Assembly (NCBI GenBank): GCA_038087875.1 | Contig: CM075987.1 | Span: 12,834,001-12,898,000, forward strand | Direction: 5' to 3' | From: Malacoraja senta | Taxonomy: Eukaryota | Length of the DNA stretch: 64,000 bases | Shown: one piece after another, positions 7,901-59,918 of the stretch | Layout of the letters: every line of letters starts with the position of its first letter | Position numbering within the stretch: the stretch's first letter is position 1 | The notes under the pieces: model-generated | The model's input: only the letters and a program-made list of their open reading frames with translations | Databases searched by the model: none | What the model was told of the DNA's origin: nothing | Position numbers and translations under genes: made by a program

Positions 7901-9812
7901 TGTTTAGTTCTAAACAGAGTGCAGGAATAGAGATAACTGCACATTGATTTAGGGAGACACAAAATGCTGAAGTAACTCAGCGGGACAGGCAGCATCTCTG
8001 GAGAGAAGGACTGGGTGACGTTTTGGGTCATGACAATCCGATTTGCACTGATTTTGAAAGCAACAGGACATATTCAGAAAGTAGCAAAAATTATCAAAGC
8101 AAATAGTTTCACAAATAGAGACGTTGAGTATAAAAGCAAGGAAGTGATGCTGAACCTTATAAAGCTATGGTTAAACCATATCTAAAATACTGCATCCAGT
8201 TCTGGTCACCACATTTTAGAAGGATGTAAAGAAGATTTAGCAGACTGTTTTGAGGGATGAAGGATTTTAGCAACAAACATTCAACTAAATGCAGGAATCA
8301 GTGCAATGTAAATACTAGGATTAGAGAAATGGACAGAACACAATATCTGAAAACTGATTTCAGAGATTCGGATATAGTATTAAGAGACATTAAAGATCTG
8401 GAAACTGAGAGCCTTCATGTGCAACAGGTGCAGTGAAGTTGGATGAGTACAGAGAAACTTGGAGGCATAGATCAGAAACAGCATCTAGGGACATGATTTC
8501 TTACTGTATCAGGAGATGGATCGGGAAGGAGAGATTATGGACATGCATCAGGTATATTATCCATACTGAAGACATAACTTGGGAACAATTTGTAAAAAGT
8601 GTGGCTAAATAGATAATTCAAGACCAGTATTTATAGACTAATCAGGGACACCAATCAGAGGCTGAAATGAGAGGTATGGCCAAGGACAGTCGCTAGAAGC
8701 TGTGATTAGTACATGGATCAGTTGCAGGAAATGGAAACATAATAGAAAACTGGGCTCGGCAGTCCCCAGAGAGTGATGAAGACAGGCTTTGCATATAATC
8801 TTAGAAGACAGGTTAGAAACTTTACCTGCGTTAGACTCTTGAGACTGTCCTTACACTTTTCTTCCAGTGTATCTGCAGAATGAACATACAGATTTTGTTT
8901 GAAACTGTAAGAGATTCACTTTTTAGCAATTCTTCAATTTAAAGGCTGCCAATATCTCCTTGGAAATTAATAGTGCAAGCTCACATTGCAAGATCTTGCT
9001 TTAGCTAAAATCATGTGTCTGGGAGAAGTATCAAGTCCACCTCAAGACCTTGGAAAAACAATCCATTTGAAACCCTGTTTTTAGTCATTAAAAATTTTAA
9101 CTATGGAATAAAGTAGCAGTAAAAAATTATATGATTATAACGTAGAGGGACATCCATTTAACACTGAGATAAGGCAAAATTATTTCTCTCAGAGGGTGGT
9201 GAATCTCTGGAATTCTCCGACCCAGATGAAGACAATATTATTAAATTTAAGGTGGAGATAGGTAAATAGTTGAAAGATCAAGGAATTGAGGGTTATGGGG
9301 AACTGGCACAGAGGAGGAGTTGATACCAACATAGATCAGCCATGATCATATTAAATGGTGTGGCAGGCTTGAGGGGCCGAGCAATCAACTCCTGCCCTGT
9401 TTTCTTGTGTTCTTCGGAATTATATCATTCATCCATTAACAAACTAAAACAAACAACAAGGGAAAACATCACAATAAAAGCTTACATGAGCAGTTCAATA
9501 TTAACACAAGCCCTTTTGGATTGGAATCAAAGATAAGCAGATTAAACAGCAAATGCACAATGGAGGACTTTACAAGAGATACTTGGGCACTCAGAGCTTT
9601 GGATAACGCTTGATCATGAGATCAAAATGAAACAGAGGAAGAAGTCTAATGATAAAATTCAATGTCAGATCTTTGTTCATGTAACCCCTTTCATAGCTGT
9701 TACCTTTTCATATTCTGACCTTTTCTTATGACAAAATAAACCATTCAGTCCATCAATGTCTATGCCCAGTCTCACAGCATTCCCATCAGTCACATCCCCC
9801 TTTAACATAGCG

Positions 9813-10110
9813 GACGGCACTGTGGCGCAGCGTTAGAGTTACTACCTTACAGCGCCAGAGGCTCGGGTTTGAGCCTGACTACGAGTGCTCACTGTGCAGA
9901 GGTGACACGATCTCCCTGTAATCATGTGCGTTTTCTCCGGGTGCTCTAGTTTTCTCCAGCAATCCAAAGATGTGCAGGTTGGTAGGTTAATTGGCTTCTA
10001 TAAATTGCCCCTTGTGTGTAGGATAGAACTCGTGTACGGGGTGATTGTTGGCCGGTGCGGATTCGGTGGGCCGAAGGGCCTGTTTCCACGCGGTATCTCT
10101 AAACTAAATC
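9813..10110 (+). mobile_element. tRNA-derived V-SINE/HE1-type SINE
   Basis: GGCACTGTGGCGCAGCG head; TCTCTAAACTAAA tail. Confidence 0.75.
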
Positions 10111-10524
10111 TATTCTCTTTCATGTCAATCAACTTATTCTTATGCCACCTGCTTACACCCAGGGCAATTAACCAAATTCTGCACTTTTGCTACGAATCCC
10201 TCTTTTCATCCTCCCCTAACAAAATGTAACACCTTCTAATTCTCAGCATTAAATTTCATCTGCCACCCCTCTGGCAATTCCAGAACAGCATCTTACTTGA
10301 ACTAAAAAATCACAAATTTTGGAGCTCAACACAAATTCTACTATTTCAGAGAATCAACCATTCTGTCCCTGTAACTCACGATTTCATAATTAATTTCCCT
10401 TTTCTCTCCTCGCCCAGTAATTTAAGATTGAAATCATCTTTATCTCTCCAGCCATACCTTCTGCTATTCACTAGCCTCTACCATTCCCACCAATCAGCAC
10501 TGCCATCATGCAATTCCTCCTGGT

Positions 10525-10840
10525 CTTAGTTTAGAGATACAACATCCAAACAAGCCCTTCAGCCCACCGAGTCCACGCCAACCATTGATCATCCGTTCAC
10601 AATAGTTCTATGTTATCCCACTATCGCATCCACTCCTTACACTCCAAGAACAATTTACAGAGGCCAATTAACCTACCAACCTACATGTCTTTGGGATGTG
10701 GGAGGAAACCGGAGCACCTGGAGGAAACCCACACGGTCACAGGGAAACCTTGCAAACTCCACCCAGATAGCACCCAAGGTTAGGATCGAACCCAGGTCTC
10801 TGGATCTCTGAGTCAGCAGCTCTAATAGCTGCACCAGTGT
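10525..10840 (-). mobile_element. tRNA-derived SINE
   Basis: Reverse-complement copy of the 9813 family. Confidence 0.7.
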
Positions 10841-11516
10841 GCAGTCCTGCCTTTATCCTATCAAAGGCCTTCCTTTCATTTATCTCCGTTCCTGCACTCT
10901 TTCTTCTCAACTTTAAACTTTCTACATCTGAAGAACATTGTTAGGTAGAAATGTTAACTATGTTTCTCTCTCCACCGATGCTGTGCGACCCAAATATTTC
11001 CAGGACTTAGTGGTTTTTATAGCGGTCCCACCTTGGATTGTTTCCAGATGGTTTCAGAGTTATATCCACTTATCCTATTGTCGGTCTAGTTGGTGAGAGA
11101 TGACATGAAAAAAATGAAATGAACTGAATTTTTAGGTTATTGCCTGAAACATAAATATTGGACAACAGTGAATCAAATGTGTACGATATACAGAAGATGT
11201 GCCTATTTATTGAACAAACAAGGCAACATAGCCTCAAGCTATGCATGGACATAGGCGTTGAATTATAAATTCCTACACCGAACTTGCACATCGCTGAAGA
11301 AATAATGAATCTATTGATCTACAGAGGGAAGATGGGGTGACTTTAGGATGCAGCTTTTGTGCCATTGGTATCCTGAACAAACAACAATAAATTCCCCCTT
11401 CTAACTTTCTGCTGGAGGAAAGGTTACTCCTGCAGCAGCTGAAGAAAGGAGCTGAGGTTGCTCTGTGACCCAAAATGGGGCTTAGTCTTGAACAGTACCT
11501 TAGGAAGACCTGCATC

Positions 11517-11650
11517 TTCTTGCGTATGGCGTGCACAGCCTAACGTTGGAGGACAACTTGTTCTATTTGATCTTATTTGATTGTGCACACCAGGTTGATT
11601 GCATTCATCGAAACAGGGCAGACCACGTGAAGGTTGCAATCTCCCACCCC
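11517..11650 (-). mobile_element. Same retroposon family, copy with predicted inactive ribozyme (catalytic C to U)
   Basis: 15-bp TSD AGGAAG(A/T)CCTGCATC (11502-11516 / 11651-11665); J4/2 reads UGAA instead of CGAA (position 11607). Confidence 0.85.
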
Positions 11651-11778
11651 AGGAAGTCCTGCATCAATGTCCAGGACTCAGGTGACTGACCTCTCACAAC
11701 CGAAACAATCTTCCTGGAGGCTGCATCAATTATGAGTTTTCTTCTCAATTCCCATTGACTTCACAGTTATCGGGCCAC

Positions 11779-11871
11779 CTTGTTCTGTTTGGTCTTCCAT
11801 TTGTGCACGGCCAGGTGGATTGCATTCGTTGAAACAGGGTGGACCACGTGAAGGTTGCAATCTCCCACCCC
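11779..11871 (-). mobile_element. Same retroposon family, 3'-truncated inverted copy with HDV-like ribozyme (11818-11871)
   Basis: Nearly identical to 12914-13006 in reverse, including 15 nt of upstream flank; ribozyme core intact. Confidence 0.85.
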
Positions 11872-11933
11872 TTTCAAGCTTCCAACTATAACTGCCACTC
11901 AGTCAACTACTTCCTTGAGGTGAAGGGACTCTC

Positions 11934-12375
11934 ATGCTGAGAGAATGGAGCAGCTGGGCTTGTACACTCTGGAGTTTAGAAGGATGAGAGGGAATCTCAT
12001 TGAAACATATGATTGTTAAGGGCTTGGACACACTAGAGGCAGGAAACATGTTCCCGATGTTGGGGGAGTCCAGAACCAGGGGCCACAGTTTAAGAATAAG
12101 GAGTAAGCCATTTAGAACGGAGACGAGGAAACACTTTTTCTCACAGAGAGTGGTGAGTCTGTGGAATTCTCTGCCTCAGAGGGCGGTGGAGGCAGGTTCT
12201 CTGGATGCTTTCAAGAGAGAGCTAGATAGGGCTCTTAAAAATAGCGGAGTCAGGGGATATGGGGAGAAGGCAGGAATGGGGTACTGATTGGGGATGATCA
12301 GCCAAGATCACATTGAATGGCGGTGCTGGCTCGAAGGGCCAAATGGCCTGCTCCTGCATCTATTGTCTATTGTCT
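11934..12375 (+). mobile_element. Young 5'-truncated CR1 3' end
   Basis: ORF ESRTRGHSLRIRSKPFRTETRKHFFSQRVVSLWNSLPQRAVEAGSLDAFKRELDR; (CTATTGT)n tail. Confidence 0.9.
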
Positions 12376-12913
12376 CACCTCTGGAATTCTGGAGTCATTT
12401 GTACACATTTGGATCCAGGCTGTGACGTTCCTCAGCTTCCAATAGAGAAGACTGACGTTCCTGTTCCTGAGCATCAACGAACAGGTCATTGCTCAATAAC
12501 TGCCACCAGATAGATTGCGAATTGCATCTTCCATTATTTACCAATTGAAAATGGACAGATGGGATGACCATTGATGAGGACATATATGAATAATTTTCCA
12601 CCCTGAGGAATGCCAGATAGAGCTACATTGGAATTGTTCAACTTAATTCTTAGTGGTTCTGGAGGATATGTTTTGAGCAAGGATGCATTTGAATTTATTC
12701 ATCTTCTTTACATCCAGAGATTGCAGCTGCTTTTTGATACATGTTGTGAGATGTAAAGCACCTTCTCCAGCTCAACTCACTCCAGAATATTCTGCACCTT
12801 CAACCTGTGAATATTTGCTATAGCTCTGGCCCACCTCTTACTTTGGGTCTCCAAGACCCTAGCCTCTATGATTTCTTCCCAAACCCTCATTCTTCTCTGT
12901 TGGAAGCTTGAAA

Positions 12914-13049
12914 GGGGTGGGAGATTGCAACCTTCATGTGGTCCACCCTGTTTCAACGAATGCAATCCACCTGGCCGTGCACAAATGGAAGACCAAACAG
13001 AACAAGTTGTCTTACAACTTTATGCTGTGCACGCCATACGCAAAAAGAA
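12914..13049 (+). mobile_element. Same retroposon family, full-length copy with HDV-like ribozyme (12914-12967)
   Basis: Same fold, catalytic C retained, L3 UUCAUGU; AAAAAGAAG tail; TSD-like GAAGCTT(C)GAAA on both sides. Confidence 0.85.
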
Positions 13050-14879
13050 GAAGCTTCGAAAAAAAATCACTTTTGAGTATATGTCACCACTTCCAGAAGG
13101 GCGGCAGAATCAGGAAGGATGTCATGAATTAATGGCTCGATTGTAATCATGCATTGTCTTTCTGCTGACTTGATAGCACACAACAAAAGTTGTCACTGTA
13201 CCTAGGTACACGTGACGATAAACTAAACTGAACTGAATTTATATATTGACTATATAGTTCCTGCACAAGGGAGCTATGAAACTCCTCACTTATCTACAAC
13301 CACACACTCTAAATTATACGTTCATGCTTTGGAGCAATTTTTATCCAATATTCCCAATCTTGATGAACAAAGCATTAAACAAACATGTGATTAACATGTT
13401 TCTAGATTTTATATGAACCGTTGTGTCTTGATCAAGAATCTGGAGAGTGTGGATTGGACCGTTTCCTCCAAATCCAAGCTTTAGGTCTTACAGACAAGGC
13501 CCGATTATTTGTTTTACACAAAACCATTGCTACTGGCCACAGTACCCGAGCCTGCATGAAAGCAGCATGGTACTATGGGAAGTTAAAACTGGCTGCACTT
13601 CCTATACTTAGAGTGACAGGTTTTCCCATTACAATTAAATTATTCTGCAGTATCCATCCTACAACGAGAAAACCCAGCTGAATACAGAATAATATGGAAC
13701 TGCAGATGCTAGAATATTGAGCAAAACATGAAGTGCTGGAGTAACTGAAGAATTTGAAGAAGAGTCTTGATCGAAACATTGCCCATTCATTCCCTTCACA
13801 GATGCTGATTGACAGGTCCACTGAATTACTTCAGCACTGTGCTTTGCAGAGAGGATAAGATGATACTCTAGAAAGGAAATCAGAGGTAAACAGAAGCTAT
13901 TAAATGGTATTTAACAGCCAATATAAAATGAAACACACATAAATGGTGGATGGGATAGCTAAAGAAAGGTTGGGGATAACTGGGGACCAAATGGGATATA
14001 TTGTACAAACTGTGGGCAAGATTAAGTTACTAACTGAGTATTTTCAATGTATATTCTTTCAAGAAAAGGCAAGATAGTAATACAGGAGATAATAGAGAAC
14101 TTCACAAAATAACAAGATAAGGAGTAGGTATGTACTCCTGAGAGCTCAGAGTCGAAAGATCAGATAGGATGCACTTACTTATGTGTGCAGATAGAATAGT
14201 TCTGATTAATATTGTGAAACTCCTTAGAAATAATGATACTGCTTAAAGGTTGCAAATGCTCCACTCAATTAAAAAAGGATGAGATGTGAACCCAGAAACT
14301 AAAGATTAATCTGTCTAACACTGTACAATCCAAGACAATATGAAAAAAATAATGGTCACTTGGAAGAAGTTAGACTAATAAATAAAACCTAACGTGGACG
14401 TATTAAAACAACATCTGACAATCGTGATTTGGCTCTTTCATGAGATAATGGAGTTTGTTGTGAGTAGCGTTGTTGACGTGCAAATAACTTTAAGATTCAA
14501 CATCATCAATCGTTATACATTAGCAAAATCAAACCCCTTAAGGCTAAAGGAATAGTGGCAATGGGGAGATGACACTGGCCAAGGTACAGATGGAATGGTA
14601 TTGCTGATTAGTTGCTTGGCAAATAGGAAGTTCGCCAGTATCAGGGATATGCTTGTTTTAAAGTGTTTATTAATGGTTTCGTCATGGGCGGATCAATCAA
14701 AGTACAAAACCAATGAACGCAACCACCGCGGAGAATGGTAACAGACTAGAGCAAGGTTGAGAATTTCTTATTGTATTTCTAATCGCAAACATATTTCTAA
14801 CAGCAAAGACACAAAACGGTTAATTCGAGCAAAGAGGAAATCGGACAAATGGAAGATTTAAAATACATGTAAGATACAT

Positions 14880-15200
14880 TTAAATCCGTTGCCTGGGGAC
14901 GGGCAGGGATGTTTCGCTGGAGTTGACAGGGGGACAGGCAGGGGTGTGGAAGCGCCGGTTGCCGGGGCTGCTCGGCTCCGGCGTGGGGAGCCTCCAACCC
15001 CGGGCGAAGCGGTGATACCACCGCTGTCCTACACACATACATCGCCGCGGCTCAACCGTCCCGCCTCCTCTCCCACCTTGCTTCCATGCGGTGAGCGCCC
15101 TTCACTGGCATGGATCACCCCCCTCGCCGAGTCGCTGCCCTTGTTATCCACAGTTGTCAACCACACAATCACTTCCGGGTGTAAACCTCGAACCTCAGAT
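14880..15200 (-). promoter_or_regulatory. CpG-rich promoter and probable first exon of an unidentified - strand gene
   Basis: Non-repeat CpG-rich patch; ETS/GABP motif CCGGAAGTG at about 15170-15178 on the - strand; candidate AAG|GTGGGA donor near 15077. Confidence 0.5.
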
Positions 15201-15734
15201 CCGGTTCAGAGTCTCAAACCTTCCTTCACTGGTGCCAGCCGCCATGTTGAGAAGGGCAAGGGCTCTGGAGATTCTGGAGCAGAGAAGGTGCTGCATTTTG
15301 TTAAACCATTCTAAAAGAGCTTCCTTTTATTCTGGGGCTGTGCCTTCTAGTCATGTATTCGCCCACAGCTGAAAACATCCTCTCCACACCCACTCAATCT
15401 AGGGCCTTGCATGATTCGGTAGGTTTCTTTCAAGGCGATCTCACCTCATCCTTAGTACTAAACCCCAGCGAGTACAGGCCCAGATTCTTCAAATGTACTT
15501 CATACGTTAACACAATAATTCTTGTAAATCTTCTCAGGATTCTCTCCAATGCCAGCACAACCTTCCTCAGATATGGGGCTCAAAACTGCAAACAATATTA
15601 CAAATGTGGCCTGACCAGCACCAAAGCTTCAGCATTACATCCTTGTTTTTATATTCAAATACTCTTACTTACTATCGACCTTTTGGGAATCCTGCACCAG
15701 CACTCCTAAGTCCCTTTGCACCTCAGATTTCTGA

Positions 15735-16497
15735 TAGAATAGAATGCCTTTTATTGTCATTCAAACAGCTTGGTTTGAACGAAATTGCATTTCTACAGTC
15801 TTAACATTACAAAAAACAAAACAAGACCCACACTTAACGCAATTTACACAAACATCCAACACAGTGGATCTCCAACACCTCCTCACTGTGATGGAAGGCA
15901 AAAGTCTTATCTCTTCTCTTTGTTCTTCTCCTGCGGTCCAACTGCAACGTCGAGGCGACTGGGGCTCCGATGTTAAAGCCCCCGGTGGGCGATGGTAAGT
16001 CCCGCGGCCATTTAAGCCGCGCCGGGCGATGTTAGGCCCTGCTCCAAGTCCTTTAAACCCCGCGATTCCAGCTGGAGAAGTTGCGGTTGCGGGAGCTCCG
16101 AAAAGCGGTCTCCCACCAGGGACCTGCGAGCTCCCGATGTTCCTGTCCACCGGGCCTGCAGCCGGAGCCTCCGAAGCTCCAAAGTCGGGTCGCAGCCGCG
16201 CACCACCACAGCTCTTCCCGTTCCGAAGTCGGCCAGCTCCGCGATGGCGAGTCCGCAGGCTCCACGACTGGAGCCCTCAGGCTAGTTCTGGCCGGAGGCC
16301 GACGCCATCGGAGACCCGACAGGGAAAAAGTCGGGTCCCCGTACAGGGAAAAGATTAAATGGTTTTCCCCACCCCCCGCATATACACAACTAAAAAATAA
16401 TAAAAAATAGAATCAAAAACATACATTTAACGAGACCATTTTTTTTTTTAAAGACAGATGAACTATAGTCGAGCCGCTGCCGTTAGGCGCTGCCACA
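15735..16497 (-). mobile_element. GC-rich non-autonomous interspersed element
   Basis: Colinear and highly similar to 56206-56970 (CCTCACTGTGATGGAAGGCAAA, GGAGCTCCGAAAAGCGGTCTCCCACC, GGAGACCCGACAGGGAAAAAGTCGGGTC). Confidence 0.75.
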
Positions 16498-19072
16498 CTC
16501 CCGAGTTCACACCATAGGGTGGATGATTATAGTCTTAAACCCAACATAGAATAAACCTAAAATAAGAGGGCATAGATTTAAGGCGAAGGCGAAAGATTTA
16601 AAAGGGTGAAGGAGAACTTTTTTGCACAAACAGTGGTGGGGAATTGCGAAAGAGCTAGTAGAGGAAGTGGTAGAGACAGATATAATTATGATGTATAAAA
16701 CACATTTGGACACGTTAATAAGAGGAAATGGTTTAGAGGAATATGTACCAAACACAGACTTATGGGACTATCAGGTAAACAACTTAGTTGGCATGGATGA
16801 GTTGGGCCAAAGGGTTTGTTTCCATGCTGTGTAACTCTATGACTCAATCACCCCCAACACACTGAACACCACCCAATCCCTCCACTCCCACCTATGCACC
16901 AAAATCTACTCCACAAACTACACATATCCCAGCCTGCAAACTATACACACCCTACAGGCTAAACATGTCCCAGGTCGCCAACTATATGTCCCAACCCAAT
17001 CAACCACACGCTCCCACCCTACAAACTACATGAACATGTTCTACAAGCCATACAGAGCTCACACAACAAAACACATACATCTTGCAAACTGCACAACTCT
17101 CCCTAGAAATTGCACACAGCGCACATTACGCACCATACAAACAACACCAACCCTAGCCACGTTCAATACACCCTCTCCTACAATCGCATACCTCATTCGA
17201 CAAGCTGCATGCATCCCACTCACAACCGATCATGCGCATGCACTACAAACAAAATAATCATCCATTCGTCACATACAATGTGCACCCAACAGGGACACAA
17301 AACTACATTCCACACAATTCATCCTACAATCAACTCACACACCACCTGGCAGTCCTATCCTGTGATGTACTCCACAAACTAAGAAACTAAACACACTGTC
17401 CCATTTACCTTCATATGACACTCCACAAACTGCACAACACCGCCGATCAACCCAATGTTGCAAACAAGATCCTACAAACTACAGTCACACTCCGCTAACT
17501 ACACACAGACCATTCAGTAATCTATACACATCTTTCTTTACAATCTCTACATAAATATTATACAAACCTTTTAACTCATTGTACAAACCATACACATCCC
17601 ACCCCATAAACTAAGCACATCCAACCCACAAACTACACTCTCAAGTTCACAAATCATACAGTAGCCAACCTTCCAAACGACTAAACCCAATGGTGCAACC
17701 AGCAATGGCTGCCTCGCCAACAGTCTGTCCCTTCCTTCTTTGTTGTTTTTTAAGTATGTGTTAAATGTATATTTTAATGTTCTTTAACTTGTTTTGTGGG
17801 GGTGTGGGGGTGAGGTAAACTTTATTTAATCTCTTACCTCGACGGAGATGCGATTTTTTCCTGTGTCGTATGTCTGCACTGCGGCCTAACATCGAGGAGT
17901 TGGCGACCTTTGCTGGAGACCAACTTCGGGAGCTCCAAACGCAGGAGCCTGCACGACTTACCATTGTGGAGCTCACGGTCCCTGTTGGGGATCGACTTTG
18001 GATCTGGAACCGCAGGAGCCTGCGGACTTTAATATCGTGGAGCTCGCAGTCTCTGGTTAGAGACCGATTTCGAGAGCTCAAAGCCGCAGGAGCTTTGACC
18101 GCTCCGATGCGGGAGCTTTGATCGCCCTGACGTGGGAGTTTCGATCGCCCCGATGCGGGAGCTCCGATCGGCGGCTGCGGAAGCTTCGATCGCCCCGGCT
18201 GCAGATGGTTCGACTCCCCCGACCGCGGCAGAATAAAGGTTCAAAGGTTCATTTATTGTCACATACACCAATTGGTGTAGTGAAATTCAAGTTGCCATTG
18301 CAGCGCACTAATAAGAATACAACACAACATTAAAGAAGAATTTAACATAAAACATAAAAACATCCCCCCACTGTGAGGGAAGGCACAAAGTCCAGTCCCC
18401 ATCCCCTTGTCCACCCATAGTCGGGCCTATTGAGGCCTCCGCAGTCGCTGCTAAGGGGTCCGAAGTTTCAGGCCCTTCTCGCCGGGTGATGGTGCTCCGG
18501 CATCAGGAGAACCTTCTCAGCGGCTTGGGATGCCTGGAACGGCCGCTTCCTTACCGGAGACGGAGATCCACCACTGGCGATCTCAGCAAAAACTCAGGCT
18601 CCCGATGTTAAAGTCAGCGCCGCCGCCCCGCGGCTGGCCGCTCCACAGACCCGCAGCTCCGCGATGTTCAATCGGCGGATTCAGCATTCCGGAGCTCCAG
18701 CGCGGCGACCCGGGCAAGGCATCGCCCGCTCCGCGATAGCGCTCCAGCGCTGCGCCGCCGCCGAAGCCGAGGTTCTGGTCGGTCCCGTCAGGAAACGTCG
18801 CTCCAGACCCCGATGGTAGGCTGCGAGGACTGGGTCGAGATGCTGCTCGGAGGAAAGCCTGCCTCTCCGACCAGGTAGGGACTGAGAAATACAGTTTCCC
18901 CCTTCCCCACCCCCCCACACATAAAAAGAATAGACCTCCAAACAACACTTTTAAACGAACTAAAAATAAAAAAAAGAAGTGAAAGGACGGACAGCTGCAG
19001 GCAGAGCAGCCATACCCAACTGGATGGCGCCCCCTTAATATTAGAGGAAGAATATTAGACTTTATTGCCTTC

Positions 19073-19209
19073 TTCTTCTTGCGTATGGCGTGCACAGCCT
19101 AAAGTTGTAGGACAACTTGTTCTATTTGATCTTACTTGATCGTGCACGCCAGGTTGATTGCATTCGTCGAAACAGGGTGGACCACGTGAAGGTTGCAATC
19201 TCCCACCCC
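19073..19209 (-). mobile_element. ~135-bp non-autonomous retroposon with a 5' HDV-like ribozyme (intact copy)
   Basis: 5' GGGGTGGGAGATTGCAACC..., 3' GCCATACGC(AAG)n tail; 10-bp TSD TATTGCCTTC (19063-19072 / 19210-19219). Confidence 0.9.
19156..19209 (-). ncRNA. Minimal HDV-like self-cleaving ribozyme
   Basis: P1 GGGGUGG/CCACCCU with G1-U wobble; P2 GAUUGCA/UGCAAUC; P3 ACC/GGU; L3 UUCACGU; G for P1.1; stub P4 UUUCGA; J4/2 CGAA with the catalytic C at 19166. Confidence 0.8.
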
Positions 19210-19750
19210 TATTGCCTTCCATCACAGTGATGAATGTGGGAATCCGCTGTGGTGGATGTTTATGTCAACCGTTATGTAGTTGTGTGTTTTGTTGCTTTTT
19301 TTTAGTATGGCTGTATGGTAATTCGATTTTCACTGTACCTTAATTGGTACATGTGGCAATAAACTGACCTTTGAACCTTTACTCCAACAACTACAAAACC
19401 TATTTTTCAAATACAGGTACTACTCCCTGAAAATTACACACACATCTGAAAAATTCTATAAACCTTACAAACCATAAAAATTCCAGCCCACAAAAAACCA
19501 CATTAAATCCTACAGATTAGACTTCATCCCTGCAAATATCATATCTCAGCACCACAAGCTACCCGACTTCCCCCTTGTAAACCATACACACCACATCCCC
19601 AGCCAATTACCCTCACCCCCCAGAAAGTATACAAACTGTCAAATCTCTCACTACAACGATAAATATCACACTCCTTAAAATGCACATGTTCTTTCCTTCA
19701 AAGTACACACACCCATCCTACAATGTTCAAACACACCTCCAGAGATGCTG

Positions 19751-19969
19751 TGTTAAAGAAGGAACTGCAGATGCTGGAAAATCGAAGGTACACAAAAATG
19801 CTGGAGAAACTCAGCGGGTGCAGCAGCATCTATGGAGCGAAGGAAATAGGCAACGTTTCGGGCCGATTGAGTCTGAAGAAGGGTTTCGGCCCGAAACGTT
19901 GCCTATTTCCTTCGCTCCATAGATGCTGCTGCACCTGCTGAGTTTCTCCAGCATTTTTGTGTACCTCCT
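19751..19969. mobile_element. Palindromic Penelope-derived element (81-bp inverted arms, hammerhead core at the centre)
   Basis: Arms 19786-19866 and 19886-19966 with one mismatch; CTGAAGAAGGGTTTCGGCCCGAAACGTT at 19873-19900; flanking GAGATGCTG duplication. Confidence 0.8.
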
Positions 19970-20997
19970 GAGATGCTGCCTGCCCTGCTGAGTTACTCCA
20001 GCATTTTGTGTCTACCCTAAAACTATACGCGTCACTGCCTTCAAACTAGGAACATGTTACCCTACAATTTACACAAATCTACCATACATATACGGCAAAT
20101 AAATGTCTTCCAATTTGCACATACTCCTGCTTAGAATATTCAGAGAATTTATCAAACAATCCACATCAAACGTGGCATTACATGACTCGTAATGTATAAA
20201 CTATACATGCCCAACCTTCAATTTACCTCCACCCATTCTACTAGCTACTGATTGCTTTGTTATAAATTAAACACCCTCCTTACATACAAGCTACTTGCAC
20301 TCAGCCAACAAACGTAACACTCTCACAGAACAGACCACACGTGCACATCCTTCAGACCACACACATTCCACTCCATTAATTCCACATGCTATCTTCCAAA
20401 TGAATAATGTCTCTTCCTGCAAACCCACCTTTCAAATAGCTCACACCCAACGTCACAAACCTGAACAAATGCATACATCCTGCAATCTGCACAGGAGACA
20501 CAGACTGCAGATGCTGTAATCTGGAACAAAAAACTGCTGGAGGAACTCAGTGGAGTAATTCAGGACAGAGGCAGGCTGTCAACCCAAAACATTGACTAAC
20601 CTTTTGCCTCCACAGATGCCGTCTCACCTGCTGAATTTCTCTAGCAGATTGTTTTTTATTACGATCTACACATGCAGTCTTGCAAATTACATATACAGTA
20701 CATTTCCTTACAAAATAACATACCCTCGTCTACAAAGAATGCAAAATCTATCTTTTAATCCATTTACTCTTAATGCAACAAACCATCCACGGCATCCCAT
20801 AAATGATACAGAAAGCATCCTGGAGCTTACACCCACCAACTCTACACGCTGCCTTCAAACTACCACATCCTCCCAACTAACTACACGATACAAAAAAACT
20901 ACATTCAAGGAAAGACCCTGGGAGTTCCTTGTGTGGAACTAATTGTACACATTTAGCGATCACATTCAGGAGAAAGGCAACAAATTCATTTGATTGT

Positions 20998-52880: not shown

Positions 52881-53377
52881 GTCTGGGATGCTGAAGCTAA
52901 GTCATGGTGAGAAATGTAGATTGAAATGAGCTGTCGTCATTGGTAAAGAACATGCAAAGGAGGCAAGTCCAGAATCAGGCAGAAATTCTAAGGGCAGATT
53001 ATCATTGTAGTAGTCCATAATTAATTGATCCATTTTCATTTCATGAAGAATTCTTCAAGGTATCTGTGCCATTTGACAGTGCTGTTTGGTGTTAAGTATA
53101 TAACAGTCAATGGCAGGAAGGCAGTCCAGTTCTCTGGCACCCTGACATTGTTGCATAAGCCCACTTCTCGCCGTCACTGCTGAGTTATTTGAACGCTCCT
53201 TTTCCAACCCATTGGACCGTTACTCTATGACATACCCGGATTGAAGCAAATTAAAGTTGTCTCAATGGTTAGATTCAGGGAACCAAATAATGGTAAATGT
53301 TTCATCGAATTATGTCTATCAAGACTTAACAAAGCTATGCCCAGGACAAGTTGACGCTGACATTTTGTCTGTTGTAG

Positions 53378-53535
53378 CTGCTACTTCGTGGCTGGGCGAG
53401 TTCCAGAGGCTGTATGATACGATTCCTTGTGTGCAAGTGGCAACTTTGAAGGAACATCGAGACCAGGTCTTGCACGTCAGCTTTTCTCATAATGGGTACT
53501 TCTTTAGCTCCTGCTCCAAGGATTGTTTTGTCAAG
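53378..53535 (+). CDS. FBXW5: FBXW5 coding exon 2 (WD40)
   Basis: AATSWLGEFQRLYDTIPCVQVATLKEHRDQVLHVSFSHNGYFFSSCSKDCFVK; tag/gtaag boundaries; 158 nt keeps frame. Confidence 0.96.
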
Positions 53536-53656
53536 GTAAGAATGCACTTGCTCTGTGAGTCCTGCCTCTCACCCTTGGAGAGTCCCTTCCCCATCGACTG
53601 GTCCTGGCTCCATCTGTTTCATCTCCCCACCGTCTACGACGAAGGCACCCATCTCT

Positions 53657-53660
<4 letters not shown>

Positions 53661-53697
<37 letters not shown>
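53661..53697. repeat. (CT)n microsatellite
   Basis: Perfect CT run. Confidence 0.95.
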
Positions 53698-53700
<3 letters not shown>

Positions 53701-54463
53701 CTCCGTCTGCCAATGTTCCTATCTCTCTTTCTCTCCAACCCTCCCAACTCTCTCGCTCCCCCCCCCCCCCAGAAGCCTCCAGCTCTCCCTTGATTTTTGT
53801 CAGAACCCATTTTCCTGATCACTTTATTTTTGGCCATCACCAAAGGTTGATTGATCAAAAGAAAGTTTCTCCATTGTATTATCCTACCTATTCATCCTTT
53901 AATGGTGTCCATTGTCAAGAATTTCCATATACTTTAGTCCAGTAATAATCTGTGTGGTATACCAATGGCTATAAGTTGACACCTATGGTGGAAGGCTTTT
54001 ATTGAAATATATTTAGAAGCCTCTAAAGATCCACGTTAAGTCTGCTTTTTCTCCTTTATTGGTTCCAGGGATGTGAATGTCACTGGATAGTTTCACATTT
54101 CTGGCCCTTCCCCTCTTGCTGCTGTCATTGAGCTATTTCAAGGAGTAATTGAGAGTCAATAATACTGCGGTGTGCCTTGGCCACACAGAAATCATATACT
54201 GTATTCCCTTCCCTGAGAGATGTTAGCATACTGGGTGGGTGTGTAAAATCTGATTGTTACATAATCCCAATTAATAATGCTAGCTTTTAATTTCTAATGT
54301 ATTTAATTGAAATCCCTAGTGTACATGTAAGCTTAAAACTCAATACCGACTTGGTCACGATGCCACCGCACCCCAAAGCTTATAAGGTGGTTCATAATGC
54401 TGCTTTGCAGAAACTCTTTCTGTTACTGTGTGTCTTCAAAAATGTTGTTCACTTTTTTTTCAG

Positions 54464-56970: not shown

Positions 56971-58664
56971 ACATTAACATCTGAAACCAATCCTTGAGCC
57001 AAAATATAGATATGCTGGGGCATAGTGTATTCTGTGTTTCTGCTGCTGGACATGGGAGTCTACAGATGATGAGTGAGAGAGAAAATGGGACGATCGCGAG
57101 GGTATACCATACAGCAGTGATTCTCACTGCTGAGTCAGTCAATTACTTTCTGAAGGCTGTTATAGTTCCCTCTGTCTAATTCACCTCTGCCCCTCGGTTA
57201 TGTAACATTCTCCCACAGCTCCATTCATTGTTGTTCTTGCCCTACCATCCGTCAATCTCTGCACCTCCTCCCCATACTATCACAACAACTTCACCTCTGG
57301 GTATCTGTGTAGTAGCTGCTGATTCACAGCTCCTGTGATCCAGTTTCAATCCTGACATTTTGATTTGGGACATTTCTTCAAGAAATGTAGTCTGCCTATT
57401 TCCTTCCACAGATGCTACCTGGTCTGCTGAGTTCCTCCAGCAGTTTGTTTTTTTACCCTGATTACAACGACCTAGACTGTGTCTGGAATATTGCGTATGG
57501 GTCTCTGTTCATACTGCTATATTTGCCACAGAGGGAGCACGTTTAAAATTCATCAGATTAATTCCTGGAAATTGGTGGGGGGGGGGGGGGCGGTGTTGTG
57601 TCGAGGTGAGATTAAGCAGCCTGGTCTATAATCTTGAGTTAAAAGAACGAGAGATGAGCTCATTGAAATTTACCAAGTTGTTACTGGCCTTCTTCTTTTC
57701 GTGTCCATCTTGTTACAAATGTTGACCTCGCTGTCATCGTCAGTCCTGGAAAGGACGCAAGCTTCGGGCGACAATCAGTGGAAGCCATCACTTGTCGCAA
57801 TAGATGATGGTGGTAGCAGAATTAGCTCAGGATACTTCCAGTTTCCAGCCCCGCGACGTGGACGCTTCTGCTATGGGGCTGTTACTGGCCTTGAACAGGG
57901 TGGATAATGTTTCTCCTGGCTAGGGTCTAAAAACAGCGGTTGTCACAAAATTAGGCGTTGGCCATGTCAGGAAGGAGCTGAGATTAAATTACTCATACTT
58001 ACTTGCTAGGTACGTTCAAATCAGAGAGTGATGTTTTTTTAAAATTTTATAATAATGGGGATAATACAGGAGAATGGCACCGAGAAAAAAGGTCAAACAT
58101 GATTTATTGAACATTGGGGCAGCCATCTTCTTGTGTTTTTTTCAACTTTATCCATTTCCCTGACTACTCTTTTAGCCCTCACCCTCTCCACGTCATAGTT
58201 TACTGTGATAACCTGCAGGCCAGTCCAGATGAAGGGTCCCCGCCCAAAATTCCTTCCGTCCATTTCCCGACACAAACACTGCCTGACCCGCTGAGCTTCT
58301 CCAGCAATTTATTTTTTGCTCCAGATTTCAGCATCTGCAGTCTCGTGACTCCAGGACTCTGCTCCTGTCTCGTAGAAAAGTCAACTTCTCAACCTGAACC
58401 ACTACAACCCTCCTCTGTCTCTTTAAACTTGATCCTCCCCTTTGCTTGTTCATAAACTGTTAAATCTCCATTAGCTTCCTGTTCTGCTGAGAGATTACTG
58501 ACATTAGATTAAGCTCATTTTCTGCCCCGAATGTGTTAGTTGAGATGTTGGCAGCATTTCATTTCAAATGTTCACAGTGGTGTTCCCTAGATGGATGTGT
58601 ATTTAAGTAGCGGTCATTGTGTTTTATCATGTTTAACAATTCAGTCCCACTCTCTCCCTGCTAG

Positions 58665-59707: not shown

Positions 59708-59918
59708 TGTTTAAGAAAGAACTGCAGATGCTGGTAAAATCGAAGGTAGACAAAAATGCTGGAGAAACTCAGCGGGTGAGGCAGCATCTATGGAGCAAAG
59801 GAATAGGTGGCGTTTCGGGTTGAGACCAAGGGTCTCGACCTGAAACGTCACCTATTCCTTCGCTTCATAGATGCTGCCTCACCCGCCGAGTTTCTCCAGC
59901 ACTTTTGTGTACCTTCAT
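59708..59918. mobile_element. Palindromic Penelope-derived element in an FBXW5 intron
   Basis: Inverted arms around 59825; 11-bp TSD CCAGGGACAGT (59697-59707 / 59919-59929). Confidence 0.8.

Follow-up and report, generated by a model that had tools for sequence, protein, structure and literature searches.

How does a retroposon of 137 nucleotides (nt) that has no open reading frame (ORF) come by a 5' end that is fixed at the same base in its copies? This question is raised by a dispersed element at positions 19073-19209 (- strand) of a 64,000-nt stretch of DNA from the skate Malacoraja senta (assembly GCA_038087875.1, contig CM075987.1, positions 12,834,001 to 12,898,000 of the forward strand), below called the window. 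An initial annotation, made from the letters of the window alone, had read the first 54 nt of the element as a self-cleaving ribozyme similar to that of hepatitis delta virus (HDV). The explanation that we favor, with a probability of about 0.7, is that a functional minimal ribozyme of the HDV/CPEB3 type generates the 5' end of this retroposon.

Anatomy of the element and fold of its head

The element at 19073-19209 (copy A) is flanked by target site duplications (TSDs). It comprises 137 nt, or 141 nt when all four AAG repeats up to 19069, which overlap the TSD, are counted. The upstream TSD GAAGGCAATA (10 bp) is located at 19210-19219 (- strand), its downstream copy at 19063-19072. Both the insertion and the TSD of copy A are confirmed by element-free paralogs of its host repeat, in which the joints skip 164-175 nt. 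This host repeat, itself abundant, extends over 19211-19300 and beyond. In stranded RNA sequencing (RNA-seq) data, the host repeat around copy A is read about 10 times more from one strand.

The head of the element (element positions 1-54; 19156-19209, - strand) reads GGGGUGG-GA-GAUUGCA-ACC-UUCACGU-GGU-CCACCCU-G-UUUCGA-CGAA-UGCAAUC. The predicted cleavage site is located directly 5' of G1 (19209). That these 54 nt hold the elements of the nested double pseudoknot of HDV, as the initial annotation had it, was confirmed by direct counting of pairs. P1 is a 7-bp helix formed by positions 1-7 (19203-19209, - strand) and 30-36 (19174-19180), with the wobble pair G1.U36 at the predicted cleavage site. 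P2, likewise of 7 bp, joins positions 10-16 (19194-19200, - strand) and 48-54 (19156-19162). The 3-bp helix P3 (positions 17-19 with 27-29, ACC/GGU; 19181-19193, - strand) encloses the loop L3, UUCACGU (19184-19190). The following segment (19167-19173, - strand) contains G37, the predicted P1.1 partner of C22, then U38 and the stub UUUCGA in place of P4. This stub comprises 6 nt between G37 and C44 and might form a UUCG loop closed by a U-A pair. The junction J4/2, CGAA (19163-19166, - strand), begins with C44 (19166), the predicted catalytic cytosine. The nested part of the structure, P1 and P3, corresponds to the minimum free energy (MFE) fold of the 54-mer, and P2 appears in the MFE fold of the full 137-nt element. 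With a total of 54 nt and a short loop for P4, the head falls within the size range (about 50-60 nt) of the minimal P4-less drz and theta ribozymes.

A 4-nt linker separates the head from a 3' domain of 66 nt (element positions 59-124; 19086-19151, - strand). This domain is predicted to fold into a closing stem of 10-11 bp (GGCGUGCAC / GUGCACGCC) with an inner 7-bp hairpin, whose loop (positions 98-102) is the most variable spot of the element. The structure is that of the folding prediction, as no covariation was found in the stems of the domain. The 3' domain is the predicted binding site of a partner reverse transcriptase (RT). It is followed by the tail UACGC(AAG)4 (19069-19085, - strand), whose last GAAG overlaps the TSD.

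The 137 nt contain no ORF: Of the three sense frames, two are interrupted by stop codons and one lacks a start codon. As claimed in the initial annotation, the element carries neither a tRNA head nor boxes for RNA polymerase III (Pol III). ARAGORN finds no tRNA in the window, Rfam reveals no similarity of the element head to 7SL, 5S, snRNA or other small RNAs, and the best matches to boxes A and B have three mismatches, which is the random mode. An internal T4 terminator is absent from the element, too. This means, the small-RNA-derived head and the internal Pol III promoter that define a short interspersed nuclear element (SINE) in the strict sense are missing. Instead, the element displays the hallmarks of a bipartite non-autonomous long interspersed nuclear element (LINE): no ORF, TSDs and a LINE-type 3' tail. 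In Kojima's terms (PMC5786205), where 'SINE' is a loose designation, this anatomy fits a bipartite non-autonomous LINE derivative.

Three independent insertions and the chance expectation of the fold

The head occurs four times in the window, with zero occurrences expected by chance, and exactly at the places given in the initial annotation: at 11650 (-), 11871 (-), 12914 (+) and 19209 (-). BLAST at word size 7 detected no further copies in the window. Copy B (134 nt; 11517-11650, - strand) is bordered by a 15-bp TSD with one mismatch, GATGCAGGwCTTCCT, at 11651-11665 and 11502-11516. Copy D (136 nt; 12914-13049, + strand) has a TSD of 11-12 bp, GAAGCTT(C)GAAA, at 12903-12913 and 13050-13061. 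It represents a second subfamily, which differs in its middle part and carries C24>U in L3 and G42>A in the stub. Copy C (11776-11871, - strand) comprises the head and about 40 nt and is truncated at its 3' end. It is 98% complementary to copy D over 111 nt, including 15 nt of common 5' flank. As copy C shares this flank and lacks a tail and a TSD of its own, it is an inverted duplicate of copy D and not a separate insertion. Thus, the four heads counted initially are real, but they correspond to three independent insertion events (A, B and D).

Two other features are likewise not common to all copies. The tail GCCATACGC(AAG)n and the TSDs of 10-15 bp are found in A, B and D, but not in C. J4/2 with the sequence CGAA and the predicted catalytic cytosine is present in A, C and D, but not in B, which reads CGAUGAA and thus carries C44>U at 11607. 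All 17 pairs are formed in copies A, C and D. Copy B pairs as well: With its P1 3' strand CUGCCCU, G6.U31 and U5.G32 can still be formed. In all three independent insertions, the fold begins at the first base of the element as defined by the TSD.

How often would such a fold arise by chance? Since a loose HDV descriptor yields about 10 matches per shuffled window, the architecture alone is weak evidence. One loose match in the window, located at 14952-15015 (+) and endowed with CGAA and a GGGG/CCCC hairpin resembling P4, is GC-rich, has neither a TSD nor a tail nor a match in Rfam and is likely a chance hit. A tight descriptor demanded all 17 pairs, a C in L3, a G following P1, and C-N-A-A preceding the P2 3' strand. 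In the window, it matches only copies A, C and D, and the same descriptor with U as catalytic base matches only copy B; in 40 shuffles, it was found 0.05 times per shuffled window. At a single given position, namely the first base as marked by the TSD, this corresponds to a chance expectation of about 4e-7 (0.05 per 128,000 positions).

A second ribozyme-headed retroposon and the relation to CPEB3

In Rfam, no match was obtained on 19000-19300 at E<=10, nor for the head in the whole window at E<=5 or at the gathering scores. The ribozyme models of Rfam include P4, which is absent in this head. A ribozyme-headed retroposon with P4 is, however, present in the same window. This second short retroposon, E2 (about 192 nt; 57689-57881, - strand), is unrelated in sequence to the 137-nt element. 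It is flanked by the TSD GCCAGTAACA and ends in the (AAG)n tail ACGAAAAGAAGAAG, and its head, too, starts at the TSD. The E2 head (57815-57892, - strand) matches the Rfam model CPEB3_ribozyme (RF00622) with 40 bits and is thus above the gathering score of 35, whereas the minimal head lies below this threshold (no match). E2 contains a real P4, CUAA in J4/2 and a P2 (AGCAGAA/UUCUGCU) that is the same as in the CPEB3 consensus. If P1 of E2 has 7 bp (CAGCCCC/GGGGCUG), the cut would fall 1-2 nt within the apparent TSD.

Three minimal heads were aligned with E2, which served as outgroup for covariation, and with the CPEB3 consensus of Rfam. All of them are colinear: P1 comprises 7 bp, J1/2 2 nt, P2 7 bp, P3 3 bp and L3 7 nt, followed by G-U. 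The sole difference in blocks consists of 13 columns of the P4 hairpin, which are missing from the minimal head. L3 (UUCACGU, including U20/G25 and C22), G37-U38 and CGAA are identical in the minimal head and the CPEB3 consensus. In the CPEB3 ribozyme, U20.G25 form a metal pocket, C22-G37 and U21.U38 constitute P1.1, and C57 in the linker is the catalytic base (PMC4836649). The residues for P1.1 and the L3 metal pocket (C22-G37 and U20.G25, CPEB3 numbering) are present in the skate head, where the formation of P1.1 itself is predicted. Across the lineages, 100% of the 85 cells of the alignment pair, and 13 of the 17 pairs change on both sides; in slid controls, only 33-47% of the cells pair. 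This cross-family change provides real compensatory support for the predicted fold. The CPEB3 ribozyme differs from the minimal head in its 18-nt P4 hairpin and in the sequences of P1, P2 and P3. Furthermore, it is a single-copy, intronic ribozyme conserved in mammals, whereas the minimal head of the skate belongs to a dispersed retroposon.

When E2 is included, all TSDs, i.e. those at 19210-19219, 11651-11665, 12903-12913 and 57882-57892, open with GAAG, GATG or AAG. The target begins with bases that correspond to those of the (AAG)n tail; this suggests priming via annealing of the nicked target to the tail of the RNA.

Copy number, boundary and variation of the family

Beyond the window, the family was examined in Logan contigs from four organisms (four runs). 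About 70,000 contigs could be placed on 18980-19300 at an identity of at least 85%. Each run contributed 9,332-20,044 contigs, whereby the stretch includes part of a neighboring repeat. The family is therefore large, as had been assumed from the copies in the window. The depth of the family contigs climbs about 30- to 100-fold at 19068/69 and drops at 19209/10. At 19209, 172 (plus 56 at 19210), 425, 265 and 310 contigs per run diverge into unlike flanks; a flank agreement of about 0.35 indicates that these flanks are unrelated. The 3' boundaries pile up at 19069-19072, which reflects the variable length of the tail. In all four organisms, G1 is the dominant 5' boundary, although contigs are unable to provide the share of 5'-truncated copies. 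This agrees with the initial annotation, according to which the copies in the window begin exactly at G1. Words of the element are present in runs from at least a dozen organisms.

At the 5% level, contigs and RNA reads vary in the head at positions 8, 24, 31, 32, 41, 42, 44 and 45 only. The changes at positions 8 (G>A in J1/2) and 45 (G>U) are no CpG transitions; all others are, among them C24>U, which attains the 5% level in the RNA run only. G45>U accounts for 15-22% of the family depth and results in CUAA as in E2. Since the majority of the family has G32, the master carries a U5.G32 wobble. A32 in copy A and U31 in copy B represent decay of one and the same CpG (31/32), and pairing was kept by happenstance. 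Consequently, the differences between the P1 helices of the copies (U-A versus U.G, G-C versus G.U), which the initial annotation had listed as pair-keeping, are one-sided transitions and not compensatory covariation. P2, P3 and the 5' strand of P1 have no varying position at the 5% level. The frequent variants at subfamily level, A8, A32, A42 and U45, affect only unpaired or pair-keeping positions. This placement fits a constraint on master copies, for which the few variants are weak evidence. The predicted catalytic C is present in about 94-98% of the family depth and lost in 2-6%.

Transcripts and the search for a partner LINE

Transcripts were investigated in one run of raw reads from a related organism (poly(A) RNA-seq, stranded), in which the counts of reads crossing the boundary are not strand-resolved. 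The element is transcribed in both orientations at depths of about 160-200 versus 220-285 reads.

In the search for an autonomous partner, a 21-mer of the tail was found in the window only in the three tailed copies. The window contains no LINE with this tail, and an Ingi or Vingi element, the partner that the initial annotation had suspected from the tail, is a candidate. No RT or endonuclease (EN) domain was detected in the ten largest ORFs of the window. A metagenome scan for the tail returned two unrelated bacterial contigs, which are chance matches. E2 contains an open frame of 44 codons that has no match among 1.84 billion proteins.

Proposed mechanism and alternative explanations

We propose that the element is a three-part, ORF-less, bipartite retroposon of the type lacking long terminal repeats (non-LTR), composed of the 54-nt head, the 66-nt structured 3' domain and the UACGC(AAG)n tail. 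It would have no promoter of its own, and its copies would be transcribed as passengers of host or neighboring transcripts. In the sense strand, the head would fold into a P4-less nested double pseudoknot of the HDV/CPEB3 type. Directly 5' of G1, the chain would be cut by C44 and by a Mg2+ ion bound in the pocket of U20.G25 and L3 so that the product RNA starts exactly at the first base of the element. The 3' domain and the (AAG)n tail could be recognized in trans by the RT of an autonomous LINE with a like tail. This RT would copy the RNA by target-primed reverse transcription (TPRT) at nicks in targets starting with GA(A/T)G, which would yield TSDs of 10-15 bp. The loss of P4 need not kill an HDV-type core, because active HDV-like ribozymes of about 56 nt without P4 occur in nature: They cleave in vitro at up to >10 per minute and are inactivated by a C>U exchange (PMC10879173).

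Several observations speak against this proposal. No HDV-type model of Rfam scores the head even at E<=10. Only about three lineages underlie the covariation across families, and the same sequences had served to derive the structure. The compensatory covariation in P1, P2 and P3 that the initial annotation expected across genomic copies is missing within the family: At the 5% level, no pair of a helix changes in both partners. Compared with other CpG cytosines, the catalytic C is not lost less often, as in dead copies, and shows no sign of selection: The loss of C44 is similar to that of C41 in the stub (2.5-6%) and close to that of C31 (5-8%). In addition, 249 RNA-seq reads cross G1 into unlike flanks. 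Molecule starts do not pile up at G1 in poly(A) RNA-seq, where less than about a fifth of the local depth starts at this base. Finally, searches in the window, in the metagenome and among proteins did not reveal a partner LINE. As for the transcripts, the poly(A) RNA-seq neither supports nor excludes cleavage, because cleavage is impossible in antisense transcripts, the majority of the copies are passengers that have decayed, and the crossing counts are not strand-resolved.

Instead of cutting, the head may serve another purpose. It could be the descendant of a CPEB3-type ribozyme that became a poor cleaver upon loss of P4 and was kept for protection of the 5' end, for binding of a partner protein or as a promoter similar to Pr77. 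In this case, the fixed 5' end would result from the transcription start or from effects at the template end and not from self-scission. We regard this as unlikely, yet as the most serious competitor. CPEB3-type ribozymes are slow, and the many RNA-seq reads across G1 as well as the lack of a start pile would be in accordance with such a role. Precedents exist, too: Pr77 of L1Tc is both a promoter and a ribozyme (PMC3383444), and the ribozyme fold of R2 is also a protein-binding, protective module (PMC6765202; PMC13708176). However, all residues implicated in catalysis by CPEB3 and HDV ribozymes are kept at the right spacing, natural P4-less relatives cleave fast, and a transcription start would require neither 17 pairs nor C44. 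Moreover, read-through reads are to be expected anyway, as most copies are old or mutated passengers.

The two other explanations do without a ribozyme. An ordinary SINE driven by an internal Pol III or Pol II promoter, in which the likeness to HDV is accidental, would account for size and copy number, and the lack of an internal T4 terminator would suit it. We consider it improbable, since similarity to tRNA, 7SL, 5S or snRNA is lacking, boxes A and B do not exceed the random level (3 mismatches), and the tight fold at its fixed position has a chance expectation of about 4e-7. Still far less credible is a mere chance likeness with meaningless pairings in a plain 3' fragment of a LINE. It can draw on the approximately 10 matches of the loose descriptor per shuffled window, but the tight descriptor matches only the copies of the window and 0.05 times per shuffle. 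In addition, the 7-nt L3, the GU and the CGAA are identical to those of CPEB3, and thousands of copies carry the head precisely at their 5' end, whereas plain 5'-truncated LINE fragments would exhibit scattered ends. A functional minimal ribozyme that makes the 5' end of the retroposon remains the explanation that we prefer.

Comparison with known ribozyme-bearing retroelements

The same kind of element is known from the R2 SIDEs and from NARTc/RIME (PMC3414825; PMC3185411; PMC4035085). R2 SIDEs of Drosophila lack an ORF and consist of a 5' HDV-like ribozyme joined to a 3' end recognized by the RT (PMC3414825). Their 5' end originates from self-cleavage of a co-transcript, and they are mobilized in trans by TPRT (Eickbush & Eickbush 2012, PMC3414825). 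By contrast to the skate element, SIDEs are rare, insert site-specifically into rDNA and contain a large ribozyme, which lies within their first ~184 nt. The skate element has a 54-nt head without P4, inserts in a dispersed manner and is present in thousands of copies in a vertebrate host. NARTc, RIME and SIDER from the L1Tc/ingi clade of trypanosomatids are dispersed non-autonomous derivatives, too, and have kept the 5' HDV-like ribozyme of the LINE (PMC3185411, PMC4035085). Thousands of copies of Pr77-L1TcRz reside in transcripts and possibly affect host mRNAs (PMC3185411, PMC4035085). However, Pr77, which is 77 nt long, includes a P4 and acts as a promoter as well, the tails are A-rich, the host is a protist, and the sequence is unrelated to that of the skate head.

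With respect to the head alone, the closest architecture is that of the minimal HDV-like ribozymes drz-Mtgn and theta (Riccitelli 2014; Kienbeck 2024, PMC10879173), which have about 55 nt, a short loop as P4 and the catalytic C as first base of J4/2. The comparison with theta ribozymes covers the architecture. The activity of the minimal drz and theta ribozymes has been proven in vitro. They occur in a phage context, many of them at tRNA 3' ends, whereas the skate head constitutes the 5' end of a eukaryotic retroposon in a window devoid of tRNAs. Nearly 99% of the minimal drz were found in Caudoviricetes phages, and no matches in the eukaryotic genomes screened (Kienbeck, PMC10879173).

HDV-like ribozymes have also been reported for the LINEs RTE, baggins, R1/R4 and LOA. 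In the accounts at hand (Ruminski 2011 via PMC5786205, PMC6765202), these LINEs are described as promoter-less and self-freed from read-through transcripts, and some have microsatellite tails. The same accounts portray them, unlike the skate element, as autonomous or much longer, with P4-bearing ribozymes. Vingi is absent from a list of ribozyme-bearing clades published in 2018. Our literature search, which did not extend to Repbase and Dfam, retrieved no description of the skate family, of a Vingi ribozyme or of a vertebrate repeat that carries an HDV-like ribozyme without P4. Likewise, it yielded no eukaryotic element with an HDV-like head devoid of P4 and no vertebrate retroposon with a CPEB3-type core. 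For a vertebrate retroposon, a P4-less head of the HDV-like type, thus, looks new.

Other features of the window

Some further structures were encountered in the window. A near-perfect hairpin at 19786-19966 has inverted arms of 81 nt with 99% complementarity and a spacer of 19 nt. Its Rfam matches to microRNA (miRNA) families are far below gathering (mir-577, 52.9 versus 100). A related 43-nt unit is located at 19965-20007, and the whole looks like a foldback repeat or a repeat of the miniature inverted-repeat transposable element (MITE) type. A palindrome at 59763-59895 scores on both strands with plant MIR2118 (52 and 49 bits versus 85) and is probably a foldback repeat and not an miRNA. 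The open frame at 53257-53793 (+) encodes a WD40 repeat (Pfam PF00400, 30 bits) and is probably an exon of a host gene.

Significance

Ribozyme-headed non-autonomous retroposons have been known from fly rDNA and trypanosomatids, and P4-less HDV-like ribozymes almost only from gut phages. The skate family joins both kinds in a vertebrate at very high copy number. With its 137 nt, the element approaches the minimal set of parts that a LINE-dependent parasite needs: a head of 54 nt that putatively trims itself, a 3' hairpin for recognition and a tail of microsatellite repeats. Such a compact, vertebrate-derived, putatively self-cleaving 5' module could be of use for the engineering of RNA templates, a field in which 5' modules of the HDV type are already employed (PMC13708176).

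On a broader scale, skates and their relatives might harbor a very large and recently active population of P4-less CPEB3-type ribozymes beside P4-bearing heads on sister retroposons like E2; we put this forward as a tentative idea that is rather doubtful in its full extent. Owing to the colinearity of the core with CPEB3 and to the existence of the P4-bearing sister E2, the origin of CPEB3 as well as effects on host transcripts can be tested directly. Provided that the heads are active, the 'mammal-only' CPEB3 ribozyme would represent the exapted head of an old lineage of vertebrate retroposons. Furthermore, thousands of sense copies in introns and untranslated regions would then cut host RNAs, which would amount to genome-wide ribozyme-mediated processing of transcripts.
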